Assembly (NCBI GenBank): GCA_030704615.1
Contig: CM060731.1
Location: 18,104,001-18,168,000, forward strand
DNA from: Takakia lepidozioides
Lineage: Eukaryota > Plantae > Bryophyta
Length of the DNA stretch: 64,000 nucleotides
Direction of reading: 5' to 3'
Positions 5,346 through 53,834 of the stretch are shown in pieces. The notes below the pieces were generated by a model. It saw only the letters and a program-made list of their open reading frames with translations, was not told the DNA's origin and made no database searches. Position 1 is the first letter of the stretch. Each line of letters opens with the position of its first letter. The position numbers and the translations under genes were made by a program.

Positions 5346-6388
5346 ACATCATAGCTGCGGTGGCACTCCTTCAATGTTCAATGTAGTGGCTATTAATGCA
5401 ATTGACTTCATCTAACACTGAATCAACTTGCAATCACTGTATTGTTCTACTTAGAGACACTTACAATTTTACGTTTTTGTTACTACAAAAAGAATTCTTT
5501 GATTTGAAGTATCTATTTGGGAGTTCTGTTAGAGCATGACCAGTAGCAGGGTTTTTTGGCGCCCTATCTTCAAAATAGTGTGGCCACCAAGGGATCCGGC
5601 AGCACATTCTCGTACTTCAAAATGGTGACCCTCACCAGATTTCGTCCCACTCCCGCACTATCTACCGCGAGCTTGGAGAGCGGCATTCTCCCGCACAACC
5701 ACAGGATCCGCTGCCCTTGCCAACAACTCCATGGTCAAATGGATTGGGAGTTTTCTTCTTGCTACCACCTCGAACAGCCCAGGTGGCGGGGCCCATGGTC
5801 CATGATCTGCCACCTCAGCCTCGCGCCATTACTCTACGCCAAGCATTAGATGGGGCCTGGAGTTGAATGCGAGGGAGCCGGTTCAGCCAGCGTGGACCCC
5901 CGCCACCCCACGGCCACCCCCGCCTCCATCGCCCGCACACCGCGCGGGCGCTGCCGTGCGACACGCCCTCCCGCGCCTCATGTTCCCGCTTGCCAGGACA
6001 TGAGTCGTGCCCTCTCCCGCATCCCCATCCCTCCTCCCATCCTGCCCTCATGCATGGCATCGCCCTCATCCCCCATGCATGCCTTCATCCTCGCCATGCT
6101 ACATGGTATCCCAATGCCCACTTTCAAAAATCGTGTCGGTTGCTTAGCTGCTCCTGGTCGTTTTCAGAGACCACTCCAAAATCTCCACACTGTAGACATA
6201 AGTTGGTTTAGCATCTATGTACATTTGGACATGGTATGTCCTCGTTGTGGAGAGTCCAATGGAGCCCAAAGCGACCAGCATGAATGTTGTTGAAAGCTCA
6301 CTAGCACCCCTTCGTAAAGGAACTTGTCAAAATGTTGATGCTGCGGATTTTCGGGCACAAAAGTCTACCTTGGAGCACGGAGCGGAGC

Positions 6389-6442
6389 TGGCATGAGTTC
6401 TTTAAAGATCCTTCACGATGGAGGGACAACCGTAATCGCAAG
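6389..6442 (+). pseudogene. Captured exon end encoding the first half of an OSB-type PDF motif (WHEFFKDPSRWRDNRNRK); inverted copy at 14995-15048
   Basis: Resembles WxxFFxNPxxWWDNRxxK of organellar ssDNA-binding (OSB) PDF motifs and ends at AAG|GTGTGG, a possible phase-0 donor. Confidence 0.7.
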
Positions 6443-6808
6443 GTGTGGCTTTCTCTTAATGTATGAGGTGAAGAAGTTTGGCTGAACGAAATGTGGTGTC
6501 ATGGAACGCGATGATCGTAGGATATGCACAGCACGGGTGTGGGATGGAGGCTTTGGAGACCTACGAGCAAATGATGTGCGGATGGGCTTCAGAAGGACAT
6601 AATGCAGAGCTACACCACATGACAATGTCTGATGATTATGACTGTTTGGATTGTTTATAGATATGTTTTTGTTTTTGGTGGAGTGCTTGGAGGTCGAGTT
6701 TCTTTTGTATATGCGGCTTCCATTACCTGGTTTGTGGTTTGAGGTTTGTACTTACCATGAAGAGGGAGTGAACAACATGAACTGATCAATGATTTCCTGA
6801 ATGGATAG

Positions 6809-7082
6809 GCTTCAATGTTGAGACTGTGGAGTACAAGAACATCAGCTTCACTGTCTGGGATGTGGGAGGCCAGGACAAGGTACTGACATCCTTTCCACTT
6901 CCCTTCTTTCAGTTTGTTTTCTTATAACTCGTTCGTACATATTAGCTGCACAGTAGTGACCATTGTTTTGCTTCTGCTCAGAAGCCTTTGTCTTGTTCCT
7001 GACCTTTCTACACCATGAACAGATCTGGCCGCAGTGGCGCCATTACTTCCAGAACACACAAGGTCTGTTTTTTGTGGTGGAT
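6809..7082 (+). pseudogene. ARF1: ADP-ribosylation factor fragment (one exon, intron and part of the next exon) in the left MULE arm
   Basis: [24 protein letters not shown]|GT...AG|[20 protein letters not shown]. Confidence 0.92.
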
Positions 7083-49961: not shown

Positions 49962-52900
49962 CTCTATCCTCAAAATTGGCAGCACATCACCCGCTGCTAT
50001 GACATATATTGCCCTAGACACACATTGCCCTAACTGCCATCCCCAAGATGCTACCCCCACCAGACTTCTCTCACTTGGGTCCTTGCAAGGCTGATTTCTA
50101 GCTTTGACTCTGTGCATGGGGCCTATCGGACAACATACACCAGCAAGCCCTCCCCCTATCCTGCATCAACTCATCTTAGTCTTATCAACTGCACAACGTA
50201 TGATGGGAGTGAGTGCAACATGGGAAAGAGCCACAACACATGATGAGCTGTAGGGAAGAAGCAACATCGTGCAAGTAAAGCAAATGATCAAACAGAAAGA
50301 CGAGGCAACATGGGAGAAGGGAAAATGGGGTCCAAGGGCTGAGAAGGTCAACTGGTCAACAATGAGGAACTGGCTCTGGAGCACTATGTTGATGATTAAA
50401 GGGAGCAGCAAATACATGTGGGGCATCGCAGCAAAGTGCATGCCAACGAGGGTCAGAATAGTGCAAGAAAGACTCCACGGATGGTGGGCAGCCAAGGGAA
50501 ATGCAGTGAGACAAGGCACTCATGGCAAGGGAGCCCAAGACAAAACTGTTGATTAGGCTACGGAGAAAAAGGAAAGCACAAGATCAACTACGAGGAAAAG
50601 TAGCAATTCAAGCGTGGGAGCTGCTGCTAAAACATGAGGAGGAAGACATACGAGGTGAAGCATCAAGGGAACTAGTAGGAGATGAGGAAGATGGAGCACA
50701 CTTTCTTGTCAAAGGTTGGCGGCGAAGAATGCAACCCAACAATCAGAAAGTGAGGCACCCGAGGCTGGACTGCTGCAAAGAGGTACAAAGACAGGAGCTG
50801 AGAATGAGATGTTGCCTTTCGTTGAAGTTCCCCACACAAGGGCTGTTTGGCAAGCAAAACCCCAGGCAAGGATGAGAGGTGAATCTGGGATAAAACCAGC
50901 AGCTGGGAGTGAGGAAAGACACAAGGAAGGGCAGCAATACCTTGTCAAATCTGAGGGTGATGGCTGGAGAAATTAAACAAGACTGGAAGTATGGGAGCAG
51001 CAATCGCATGAAGAAAATCTGCCTGAGAGGCTGAAGAGTGAAAGGGAGGAAGACAGGCACCTCGCTTATGAAAAGTGGAAGGGCAGGTAGAAAACCTGAT
51101 GCCTGAAATTGATGGGAGCTCGTGGGAGACTCTACCAAGAAGACTCCAATCAGCTGTTGCCAACAATCGGACCAGTGAAAGATCGCCCTTGGCTGGCGCA
51201 ACACCACAAAATAAGTGCATCCTGATAGCATGGTGAGTGGGGCACCAACAGAGCCAGAAATGAGGGAGAAGGAGGAGACTTCCCTGCCAAGAAAGTCAAT
51301 GCGCGCCTGCAGCGGCATGCAAGGAAAGGGACACCGTAAATGTTGCCAACAGATGTAAATCAGTGCTCATTCATTCGAAAGCACCATGGGAGATGAAGGA
51401 AAAGACATATGCAGGGACGTTGAAGCATAAAAGAGGAGAGCACTTCACTTGGGAAGAAAGTAAAGCATTGGAGAACGAGGCTGATGACTGGCAGTCTGAA
51501 AAGGAAAGGCGGTTGTGGGAAACCCTGCCAAGACCCAAGACAACCATATAGAGAGAATCAAGCAGGTGGGAACTGCCCTTCATTGGGGGTGGTGCAAACA
51601 AGAGCAACCAAACGCTGAACCACATGAGAAGATAGTGTGTCATCACAGATGGAGACCCTGGAAAATGCTCTGCCCAGGAGATGAAGAACATTAGGCAACT
51701 AGAAACGTGGGGGGCTGAATATGCTCTGCAGTCAACTTGGCTTGTTGAATGCTTGCATAAGAGATGAGGGGTTGCTGTCAGTACACGGCATTGAGTTCAT
51801 CAAATCCTACAACAGCCCACCATCGCTGCCCACTGCTTAGAAACTGCCACAAAAACAGTTTCACAGGACTTACAGATGATTGTGGAAGGCAAGGCCCCTT
51901 GCCATGGGCCAGATTAATTGTATGTTGCAGCCCAGAACAACGACGGGAAGTCATCTAGGGCAGCAAACCCCATCTTGGCAGCGTCTTTTGTGTGAGAGAA
52001 GTCAAGCTGAACCTGCTCATCATATCGAGTGGGATGGACCAGATGTAAAGCTGCCAAGCCAACCACACTCATTTCCGCACTCAAGCAACATAAGCTGGAG
52101 CCATTTTCAGGTTATGAGTACCCGTGTTTTAAGAATACTCCTTCTTCAACTTGCGGTGAACGGGCAGAAAACTTCACAATGTGCAGCAGATCAATGGACC
52201 AAGATGCGGAGCTGAATTGGGTATCCAATTAGGCAATGCTGGTTTCAAAACCCCGTTCCATCCCTGCGTTTCGAAGATCTGGCTTGAATGGGCACACTCC
52301 GGCAGTGGAAGGCTCACGGAGTAATGAGTTTGGGCTGATATGCATGCTGACATGCCATGCCGGTGCAAAGAACAACGTTCTGAGTGGCGATTATGATCTC
52401 AAAATCTGCCCCTGCATTCAAGCTGATTTCTCTCGAGCAGAGCCGCCTTGTGGATGTTCCAGCCAGTGTCCAAAAACAGCTCAAGTGCAAGACAACAACA
52501 TCAGCAAGGCATGGTTAGCTAAGCAAGGTCATGGTGGAGAGGCATTTGAACTCTCTGAACGTAATGTGGTCGGACTTCACCCCCTCCCACATCAACTGGT
52601 CTCCAAAACCTGCAATCCCCGCCCCTGTTGTGCATGTCCTGCGATCATCGCTTTCCACGACACCACATTTCGCTCAGCCATATTGTTGAACACTCCCTAT
52701 CTAGAAGGGTATTCATGTTCAGAATGACATCTACCACAATTCCAGCTTTGACGATGCAACCATGGACCTCTTTGCCCTTCTCCAACAGGCTCGCACATGC
52801 ACTACAAACACAAACAAACGTAATGTGCTCGGGCTTCACCCCTAGACCCACATCATTTGCTCATAGGTCTCCAAAACCCGCAATCCTCGCCCATGTTGTG

Positions 52901-53350
52901 CATGTCCTGCGATCATCACGTTCCACCACACCACATTTCGCTCAGCCATATTGTTAAACACTCCTTGTCCACAAGGGAATGCTCCCACGTTTGGCATACA
53001 TGTCGACGAGGTATTGTTACATCTGGTACAGTTCCAGCTTTGACAATGTCACGATGGACCTCTTTGCCCTTTACCAAGTCTCCAGGGCTGCCAGGTTTGC
53101 ACATGCATTGCAAACACAAATGAACGTGACCCGGTCAGGCTGCACCTCTTCTCAACATTTGCTCATATGTCTCCAATGCCCTCATCCCGCACACATGCTG
53201 GCCATATCTTGCGAGATTCAGCGTGTTCCTTGAGACAACATCTTGTTCAGCCATGTTATCAAACTCTCCCTTCGCAACTTCATAGGTCTCCAAAGCCTCC
53301 ATCCCACATCCCTGCTGTGCATACCCTGCAAGCATCGCACTCCACGACAC
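49962..53350 (-). repeat. Inverted copy of the CACTA-1 cargo (~25530-28930), including PPR fragments at 52560-53350
   Basis: Mirrored ORFs 52979..53233 vs 25649..25903, 52029..52232 vs 26653..26856 and 50166..50519 vs 28377..28730. Confidence 0.92.
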
Positions 53351-53834
53351 TATTTCATTTGCTCTGTTACAGCAGAGACCATCCCTGGTGTGTTCATTGG
53401 TCCATCCTTTCCTTCCCTCCCCCTCCTCTCTTTCCCTCTTTTTCTCTCTTTTCGAATCATAGGTAATCTGGAGCTTGAAATCCGGCCCTTTTGGATGAAT
53501 CTGGACCCACACTCGATCCTTGCTCCTTCAGCTATCCATGCCTGTGCTTGCAAGGTGAAAACGCAGAGCTCCTGCAGTTCAAGAAGATGAAGATCCGGGC
53601 ATTGCGGGCAGTTCCAAAAACTTGGCGCGACGATTTCTATTGGCCTATTTTGCGCGGGCTGTCCGGGCAGATTCCAAAGAAATTGATGACGACAGTCACT
53701 TCGCACTTATCACTCCGCAGTGATGGTAGAACTGACTTCGTGTTTGTCACTGCAGAGTGATGTAGTCATAATCGCACTTATCACTGCAAATGTAGTGATA
53801 TTTGTAGTCATAAAAACGATAATCTGTACTAGTG

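Follow-up and report, generated by a model that had tools for sequence, protein, structure and literature searches.

Nested Pack-type transposons in Takakia lepidozioides with interiors that are probably largely dead PPR-DYW pieces

Elements and their termini

Within the window, that is, the whole 64-kb stretch of Takakia lepidozioides DNA that was analysed, lies a 48-kb stretch that probably consists of a nest of Pack-type, cut-and-paste transposons whose interiors are largely dead PPR-DYW pieces. Gene-capturing transposons are a known class; the unusual part is the PPR-DYW cargo. Boundaries, cargo content, identities and pseudogene state are given below as observed. Three element types with differing termini are present: a putative Mutator-like element (MULE), the CACTA-1/CACTA-2 family and the CACTA-3 family.

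5838..15599 (no strand assigned): putative Mutator-like element (Pack-MULE type), non-autonomous, 9,762 bp, with a perfect 9-bp TSD TTACTCTAC on both sides
24669..31083 (- strand): CACTA-1, complete non-autonomous Pack-CACTA, 6,415 bp, in the orientation opposite to CACTA-2
33992..53834 (+ strand): CACTA-3, Pack-CACTA of a second family, 19,843 bp (9,415 bp minus the nested CACTA-2)
39534..49961 (+ strand): CACTA-2, transposase-bearing member of the CACTA-1 family, 10,428 bp, with both TIRs, nested in CACTA-3

The first-pass annotation assigned distinct terminal inverted repeats (TIRs) to the three types, and our inspection of TIRs and TSDs agrees; each TIR pattern occurs at the predicted ends only, with 0 occurrences expected by chance in the window pattern search. 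The MULE has 42-bp termini with one base different between the ends. Extending inwards from these are inverted arms, 97.8% identical between 5838-7083 and 15599-14355, 95.6% between 7084-7422 and 13796-13470, and 87.9% in the innermost part (7422-8026 against 13377-12778). The 9-bp TSD TTACTCTAC and the inverted arms, 97.8% identical over at least 1.25 kb, correspond to the 9-11-bp TSD and long TIRs of MULEs, and the Mutator-like name is a putative one, given from TSD length and long TIRs alone. Among the internal ORFs scanned with Pfam, none has a transposase domain.

TIRs starting with CACTA, a trait of the CACTA (En/Spm) superfamily, are present in CACTA-1, CACTA-2 and CACTA-3. The ends of CACTA-1 and CACTA-2 (24669, 31083, 39534 and 49961) carry CACTAGAAGCATTCGTGTC, found at either end of CACTA-1 with a 19/20 match. 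Those of CACTA-3, at 33992 and 53834, read CACTA[C/G]TACAGATTA..., and its 28-bp TIRs, CACTACTACAGATTAACGTTTTTATGAC and CACTAGTACAGATTATCGTTTTTATGAC, have 2 differences; its subterminal repeats are of the ATGACTAC type. The 3-bp TSD, also a superfamily trait, is present in CACTA-1 (AGC/AGC) and CACTA-3 (ATA/ATA) and absent from CACTA-2, the flanks of which, CAG and CTC, do not match.

No transposase domain was found with Pfam in the tested ORFs of CACTA-1 or CACTA-3. CACTA-2 has Pfam matches to a TnpD-type Transposase_21 (ORF 43633-45531; PF02992, 9.9e-74), with plant or metagenomic PF02992 proteins at no more than 54% identity as its nearest database relatives, and DUF4216 (46897-47646); among the ORFs tested with Pfam, these two domains are confined to 43.6-47.6 kb of the window. 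The 7,698-bp segment 42264-49961 of CACTA-2 is unique within the window, and directly next to the 3' end of the element lies a 595-bp segment repeated from its interior.

PPR-derived interiors

PPR content was determined with Pfam (PPR, E, E+, DYW) plus a profile scan in all six reading frames at E<=1e-3. The PPR-like total of 9,351 bp is divided among the MULE (4,455 bp; PPR-like share 46%), CACTA-3 (3,703 bp; 39%), CACTA-1 (1,016 bp; 16%) and CACTA-2 (177 bp); outside the elements, the window has 0 bp at this threshold, the best outside match having an E-value of 0.18. The earlier statement that essentially all PPR sequence lies within TE boundaries is thus confirmed, and is statistically weak when taken alone because the elements together make up 56% of the window and independent PPR tracts are few. 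With Pfam matches to PPR, E, E+ and DYW, the MULE, CACTA-1 and CACTA-3 have the host-gene-derived interior of Pack-TYPE elements, defined as non-autonomous elements with TIRs and TSDs.

Alternatively, the transposons could have landed in an existing tandem cluster of PPR-DYW genes or pseudogenes, the PPR sequence then being host DNA and the boundaries misdrawn. A PLS unit is indeed cut by the 5' end of CACTA-2 at 39533/39534, after ..VSWNAMLAGYAQQ, and PPR genes are abundant in early land plants, with about 2,016 in Takakia (PMC13386178). However, the interrupted unit is itself within CACTA-3, the TSDs of the MULE (9 bp), CACTA-1 (3 bp) and CACTA-3 (3 bp) are exact, and nothing PPR-like at E<=1e-3 extends beyond the boundaries that they define. 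The exact TSDs and the lack of outside PPR sequence largely refute such a cluster, which we regard as extremely improbable.

The interiors comprise the following cargo and associated segments.

7584..9218 (+ strand): MULE cargo on the other strand, two PPR classes
10351..13208 (- strand): MULE cargo, mosaic PPR-DYW pseudogene (phmmer; Pfam E motif 1.4e-17, E+, DYW)
12002..12139 (- strand): MULE copy of a shared ~140-bp block, matching the PDF-like exon tail and the next stop-rich stretch of a 540-bp unit
25460..26270 (+ strand): CACTA-1 cargo, degenerate PLS units (Pfam PPR 28.7 bits; phmmer), a copy of 53352-52595
29162..30232 (+ strand): two ~540-bp tandem block copies of CACTA-1 (29164-29625 against 29702-30162, 84%)
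34566..36853 (+ strand): CACTA-3 cargo, PPR-DYW pseudogene truncated at the 5' end, C-terminus complete (E1, E2, DYW)
37311..39533 (+ strand): CACTA-3 cargo, mixed: PLS fragment (37311-37625), block copies (37664-38574), then PPR N-terminal region and PLS units (38600-39533)
49962..53352 (- strand): segment beyond the CACTA-2 3' TIR, collinear with the CACTA-1 interior (98.4% to 28928-25530)
53353..53834 (- strand): right subterminal part of CACTA-3, holding a block piece (53454-53547) that codes for a PDF-like peptide

In the MULE pseudogene, PLS units are followed by a first copy of P2-L2-S2-E1 (12785-12182) and the block (12139-12002), after which come PLS units and P2-L2-S2-E1-E2-DYW (11321-10351). 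Rearrangement is evident here from the doubled P2-L2-S2-E1 region, from an E-motif fragment lying upstream of PLS units, a non-canonical order, and from a tandem duplication of 131 bp (12309-12573); the pseudogene has 14 or more frame breaks. The C-terminal region of the MULE (10929-10351) retains E, E+ and DYW with HSEK, and CGDCH is intact. The cargo of the opposite strand comprises arm units (7584-8035) of the homogeneous PLS class and a divergent second PPR (8065-9218) with 55-63% identity to the remaining units; ORF 8654-9040 matches Pfam PPR_2 at 4.3e-16.

The CACTA-3 pseudogene (Pfam DYW 1e-20, E 7e-11, E+; PPR 1.9e-19) has at least 8 frame breaks and a ~220-bp insertion at about 35680-35900, and the C-terminal region (36332-36856) comprises E, E+ and DYW with HSEK, with a frameshift within CGDCH. 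The modules correspond to those of PLS-class PPR-DYW editing factors: PLS repeats, then E1/E2, then a DYW deaminase domain bearing HxE and CxxCH. Stops and frameshifts occur in every tract, with 4 to 14 or more breaks per tract, and no PPR tract of the window has a continuous ORF with canonical motif order. All PPR tracts are pseudogenes, and none of them makes a working editing factor.

The first-pass annotation had seen in such elements a possible route to PPR expansion and had suggested a search for intact PPRs inside them; within the window, that search returned only broken tracts, with a longest PPR ORF of 174 aa. Carriage and rearrangement of PPR-DYW sequence are borne out, the latter also by context-specific junctions, but functional expansion is not. 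The cargo does hold all the modules of an editing factor (PLS, E1/E2, DYW with HSEK and CGDCH) in reshuffled form, and among the lineages compared it is Takakia that the retroposition account fits least (PMC13386178). Set against the heavily broken tracts, the short ORFs and the non-canonical motif order, this leaves it very unlikely that Pack elements are a working route for assembling and dispersing new PPR-DYW editing factors. The elements are instead likely to disperse PPR pseudogene sequence and no functional editing factors. Because all copies are dead, the locus is evidence for the spread of sequence, not for the creation of function.

Sequences shared among the families

The MULE block (12002-12139) resembles 38120-37982 of CACTA-3 (87%) and 29808-29670 of CACTA-1 (86%), and 11999-12139 resembles 40787-40927 of CACTA-2 (85%). 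Previously described as a common non-coding block, it is indeed shared (84-87%) but is probably not purely non-coding: the longer unit encodes a recurring PDF-like peptide, which in ORF 38432-38794 of CACTA-3 is in frame with a PPR N-terminus. Preceding the block copies of CACTA-1, of which 29634-30232 is 84% identical to 37938-38528 of CACTA-3, is one PLS-derived unit (28940-29149; nhmmer E 3.7e-16 to the window PLS profile, no Pfam match). Mirror copies of the block pair and of this unit are found in CACTA-2 at 40392-41435 and 41448-41657, respectively. The junctions between PPR and block, left and right, are different in every context.

PLS units of different families share 74-85% DNA identity and are not closer to each other than are units of one array, so that their earlier description as near-identical was overstated; overall, unit identity is 74-91%, independent of element. 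Between the MULE and CACTA-3, the non-repetitive C-terminal region (P2-L2-S2-E-DYW) has only 78% identity. Comparison of PLS-unit phylogeny with TE family, also proposed in the first-pass annotation, reveals no sorting: family labels do not cluster on the unit tree (6 label changes against a shuffled mean of 6.8). Units that are ~80% alike and unsorted by family argue against recent sharing among the three families, and this identity could equally reflect independent captures from a highly uniform gene family or a single old capture with later exchange.

A 5.55-kb tract and the history of the locus

Unit matches of 99-100% are found only between CACTA-1 and the right side of CACTA-3; because they lie within one 5.55-kb tract of ~98% identity, they reflect a single recent local copying, not independent captures. 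The tract is collinear between CACTA-1 and a composite of the CACTA-2 5' part and the CACTA-3 interior: 28341-31083 is the reverse complement of 39534-42263 (97.9%), and 25530-28928 that of 49962-53352 (98.4%). It runs from the 5' TIR through block repeats, a 595-bp repeat (r) and 2 kb of unassigned DNA to PLS units, the part beyond CACTA-2 consisting of r (49962-50553, a repeat of 41669-42263), the 2 kb of unassigned DNA and the PLS units 52595-53352. Copies of r are 97.8% identical, and the three form a star-like pattern in which 7, 5 and 2 changes are private. At their 3' ends, CACTA-1 and CACTA-2 have only 86% identity over about 70 bp.

In both contexts, recognisable PPR sequence begins at the tract junction 25530/53352. 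Spanning this end of the CACTA-1 homology is ORF 53138-53527, which leads from a PDF-like peptide into a PPR tract (Pfam PPR 5.1e-06), and 53353-53834 has no similarity to 24669-25529 of CACTA-1. This junction, which no simple single-step model explains, and the missing TSD of CACTA-2 both count against the nest reading.

For this one pair, CACTA-1 and the composite, the passing of cargo between neighbouring TEs, raised earlier as an alternative, is supported. Extended to the whole locus, it would mean a single PPR-plus-block capture followed by local passage to the two other families through nesting, recombination or repair. One such transfer is visible, the elements are less than 48 kb apart, and the block, mostly free of PPR-consensus constraint, is common to all three families. 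Cross-family identity of 74-87%, however, falls well short of the 98% seen in the transfer that can be demonstrated, and implies events much older than the present arrangement; block/PPR junctions vary by context, and the MULE also has a second, unrelated PPR. A single local origin is thus unlikely.

We infer an order and mechanism of events in which the interiors would be mosaics of decayed fragments of one homogeneous PLS-DYW PPR subfamily and a linked ~540-bp PDF-exon block. The cargo would be older than the latest moves, having been acquired, or inherited from a common PPR-plus-block pool, while unit copies were still alike. It may since have drifted to about 80% identity, and tandem duplication and illegitimate joins, many of which would fall on or close to conserved PPR motifs, may have reshuffled it in the meantime. 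The 5.55-kb tract could have arisen by transposition of a chimeric element, or by repair or conversion with the neighbour as template, one end falling within the conserved stretch of a PLS unit that codes for VVSW. The 7.7-kb transposase segment with its terminal 3' TIR may have gained the flanking r duplication at around that time.

More speculatively, a PPR-plus-PDF-block pool might be carried by several DNA-transposon families and swapped among them through homology-guided template switching at conserved PPR motifs, occasionally seeding functional PLS-DYW factors. We consider this quite unlikely; if true, PPR expansion of the Takakia type would gain a DNA-transposon route, beside or replacing retroposition.

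Comparison with known systems

The build-up of thousands of PPR-DYW editing factors in early land plants is still explained chiefly by retroposition: dispersed duplication and retroposition yield cDNA copies flanked by LTR elements, and intron loss is 52% in Takakia against 75-93% in hornworts and lycophytes (PMC13386178). That model and our locus have in common the gene family, probably the species group, and dispersed, TE-associated copies. Here, however, TIR- and TSD-bearing DNA transposons act as the vehicles, and what they carry is fragments and pseudogenes, not annotated genes. Two DNA-transposon superfamilies that carry, rearrange and locally copy PPR-DYW sequence represent a second way of dispersing the sequence of this family, and their repeat-rich cargo can steer exchange between elements. 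In genomes of this kind, some counted PPR genes and some 'dispersed duplicates' may be transposon-borne pseudogenes.

Pack-MULEs, described in rice (cf. PMC5861414), are Mutator-like elements that carry pieces of host genes. They resemble the element at 5838-15599 in being non-autonomous, with long TIRs, a 9-bp TSD and host-type gene fragments, which frequently derive from two or more genes and for the most part are non-functional. The MULE described here differs in its unusually long arms (about 2.2-2.8 kb) with PPR fragments inside them, in a cargo drawn nearly all from one gene family (PPR-DYW) and in its bryophyte-grade host; no autonomous partner of it was seen in the window.

Pack-CACTA, or Pack-TYPE, elements (PMC8903248; reviewed in PMC13317346) share with CACTA-1 and CACTA-3 the CACTA termini, a 3-bp TSD, shuffled captured coding fragments and the lack of transposase, and a related transposase-bearing element is close by here; the Pack-TYPE survey (PMC8903248) mentions neither PPR nor moss or bryophytes. 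The present locus differs from them in that the same cargo class and linked block occur in two CACTA families and a MULE, and in that one element has a cargo collinear with the DNA next to its putatively autonomous relative.

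Element boundaries

Four DNA transposons, one of them nested in another, were delimited by comparison of the window with itself and by a search for CACTA...TAGTG pairs. Exact target-site duplications (TSDs) border three of them.

DNA transposons of the window, with termini, flanks and PPR-like content
5838–15599: Mutator-like element (MULE); termini GCCAAGCATTAGATGGGG/CCC...; TTACTCTAC on both flanks, a perfect 9-bp TSD; PPR-like 4,455 bp (46% of element)
24669–31083: CACTA-1; TIR CACTAGAAGCATTCGTGTC; TSD AGC/AGC; PPR-like 1,016 bp (16% of element)
33992–53834: CACTA-3; different 28-bp TIR with 2 mismatches; TSD ATA/ATA; ATGACTAC-type subterminal repeats; PPR-like 3,703 bp (39% of element), excluding CACTA-2
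39534–49961: CACTA-2, transposase-bearing, nested in CACTA-3; CACTA-1-type TIRs; flanks CAG and CTC; PPR-like 177 bp (1.7% of element)

The first-pass annotation had described families with different TIRs, and the termini of the MULE, of CACTA-1 and CACTA-2, and of CACTA-3 are indeed distinct, each pattern being confined to the predicted ends of its own elements (chance expectation in the window, none). Among the four elements, a transposase is present in CACTA-2 only (Pfam Transposase_21, 9.9e-74, with DUF4216); its 632-aa transposase ORF has a best identity of 54% in a word-index protein search. As its flanks differ (CAG versus CTC), CACTA-2 is not a simple insertion. The inverted arms of the MULE are very long (5838–8035 versus 12778–15599), with additional segments in the right arm at 13797–14354 and 13378–13469, and in the self-comparison their identity drops inward from 97.8% through 95.6% to 87.9%.

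Directly beyond the right end of CACTA-3 is an ORF with a PHD finger (53875–54240 (+), Pfam 7.8e-10), earlier assigned to a retroelement. Also outside the DNA transposons are direct repeats of 96–98% identity (19075–19487 and 54586–55000; 54497–54583 and 55000–55086), which probably represent another repeat family, for example LTRs or other elements.

PPR-derived cargo

PPR sequence was detected with Pfam on stop-free fragments and with a profile, derived from PPR fragments of the window itself, run against all six-frame fragments. The PPR-like sequence of the window totals 9,351 bp and lies entirely inside the elements, as had been claimed; outside them, the six-frame profile scan of the window found 0 bp, with a best E of 0.18. 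Since 56% of the window is taken up by the elements, and the independent PPR tracts in them are few, this confinement carries limited statistical weight by itself. More telling is the combination of exact TSDs with the presence of PPR sequence in every non-autonomous element.

Every PPR tract in the window is a pseudogene: the reading frame is broken 4 to 14 or more times in each, and the longest PPR ORF has 174 aa. Complete C-termini, comprising E1, E2 and a DYW domain with HSEK and CGDCH, are found in two tracts, at 36332–36856 (+) and 10929–10351 (−). With all tracts broken, there is no support for the elements as suppliers of functional editing factors, and the route to PPR expansion that the first-pass annotation had proposed through such factors is not upheld. 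Rfam and tRNA scans gave no matches.

Located in the L2/S2-E1 region of the MULE PPR tract is a 131-bp tandem duplication (12309–12573, 95% identity), which illustrates duplication of cargo at the unit scale. In the PPR-DYW pseudogene of CACTA-3, an S motif is interrupted between ..EDAKG and FDNMAE... by ~220 bp of non-PPR sequence (35680–35900), which the MULE copy lacks and which would therefore represent an intron or else a short insertion.

For comparison between families, 20 PLS units (PPR repeat units) were extracted with nhmmer and aligned. Sixteen form a homogeneous class with pairwise DNA identity of 74–91%; a degenerate MULE unit at 11533 is 62–76% identical to the other units of this class. 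MULE and CACTA-3 units are up to 85% identical, and identity within arrays is equally high or higher. The maximum-likelihood unit tree is nearly star-like and does not sort the units by transposon family: 6 changes of transposon label are needed, the mean after shuffling being 6.8. Between the MULE (10431–11340) and CACTA-3 (36812–35880), the C-terminal region, which is non-repetitive and can be matched without ambiguity, has 78% identity. Identities of 99–100% are restricted to two unit pairs, both between CACTA-1 and the right side of CACTA-3. The units thus belong to one PPR family, as previously stated, but cannot be described as near-identical.

At the centre of the MULE is a second PPR (8065–9218 (+)), just 55–63% identical to the homogeneous units and containing the cleanest PPR ORF of this element (8654–9040, 128 aa). 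At least two distinct PPR genes have therefore contributed to the cargo of the MULE.

The shared block

Accompanying the PPR sequence is a ~140-bp block, which the self-comparison confirms as common to the families, with matches of 84–87%. It is part of a ~540-bp unit.

Occurrences of the ~540-bp block unit and a related piece
29162–30232: tandem units in CACTA-1
40392–41435: tandem units in CACTA-2
37664–38574: about 1.5–2 copies in CACTA-3
53454–53547: block piece of 90 bp

Translation of the block gives a repeated peptide of the type WVQIHPRGPDFKLQITYDS...YKKPAWVDGQ, its recurring part also written QIHP[RK]G[PL]DFKLQIT..., which is joined to PPR sequence in two ORFs: at 38432–38794 (+) it shares the reading frame of a PPR N-terminal region, and at 53138–53527 (−) it continues into PLS sequence. 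The block ORFs have no Pfam match at E ≤ 1. The peptide appears to resemble the PDF motif of OSB proteins, and in the two ORFs a putative PDF motif of OSB type may be fused to PLS repeats. The part of the block shared with the MULE consists of the tail of the exon-like piece and the stop-rich stretch after it.

Junctions between block and PPR sequence are different in every context, indicating either repeated joining of the block to PPR units or rearrangement after capture. The order common to all three families, in which PPR sequence is followed by the block and then by PPR sequence or the element terminus, suggests a source in which the two were already linked.

A segment duplicated between neighbouring elements

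Read in reverse, CACTA-1 starts with the 5′ TIR and block repeats, followed by a 595-bp segment referred to here as r and a 2-kb stretch of unknown DNA; after these come PLS units, a unique segment of 861 bp and the 3′ TIR. In this orientation its first 2.75 kb are 97.9% identical to the 5′ part of CACTA-2 (39534–42263), and 3.4 kb from r onward are 98.4% identical to 49962–53352, a region beyond the CACTA-2 3′ TIR yet within CACTA-3. In the composite of CACTA-2 and CACTA-3, r forms a direct repeat (41669–42263 and 49962–50553, 97.8%) that flanks a 7.7-kb transposase segment ending in the CACTA-2 3′ TIR, and the right copy begins at the very next base after this TIR. Once the 7.7-kb segment and one r are taken out, the remaining 5.55 kb form a tract that is collinear with CACTA-1.

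On its inner side this tract ends within the sequence encoding the conserved VVSW of a PLS unit, beyond which the two copies diverge (...CRDVVSW in CACTA-1, ...ANEIVSW in the CACTA-2/CACTA-3 composite). Similarity at the 3′ termini of CACTA-1 and CACTA-2 extends over just ~70 bp, at 86%. Kinship of the 861-bp CACTA-1 segment (24669–25529) with 53353–53834 was rejected, the local alignment score being not above that of shuffled sequence.

In a three-way alignment, the r copies carry 7, 5 and 2 private changes, a star-like pattern that places the r duplication and the split of CACTA-1 at about equal age. A recombinant origin of the CACTA-1 r segment was discarded, as in this alignment the private changes are interleaved, with no single crossover.

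The identical-looking PPR units of CACTA-1/2 and CACTA-3 are one duplicated segment, a concrete instance of cargo transfer between neighbouring elements, and the suggestion that cargo is passed between adjacent transposons thereby holds for one case. A single 5.5-kb tract may have been copied recently between two members of one CACTA family that were older and had diverged, possibly by gap repair or conversion templated on the neighbour, with the copying breaking off in a PPR motif; alternatively, a chimeric element could have transposed locally. Under either scenario, a transposase-bearing relative would then have arrived by insertion or copying, and recombination between the duplicated 5′ parts would have resolved it. 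The r repeat and the absent TSD point to a non-standard origin of CACTA-2, for example insertion followed by recombination, or element-templated synthesis.

Relation to known systems

These results support Pack-type DNA transposons that carry, rearrange and locally hand on PPR-DYW sequence. The anatomy given in the first-pass annotation largely stands, but its degree of similarity was overstated.

PPR expansion in early land plants has been ascribed to dispersed duplication tied to retroposition, with LTRs at the flanks, and Takakia, with 2,016 PPRs, has the weakest intron-loss signal (PMC13386178). Literature searches returned no paper combining Takakia, pentatricopeptide and transposon, none combining Pack-CACTA and PPR, and none tying DNA transposons to PPR spread in bryophytes; a Pack-TYPE survey mentions neither PPR nor bryophytes (PMC8903248). 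The elements are Pack-MULE and Pack-CACTA transposons, both known types, with an unusual, family-specific cargo; distinctive for this window are the presence of the same PPR and block cargo in three families and one resolvable transfer between elements.
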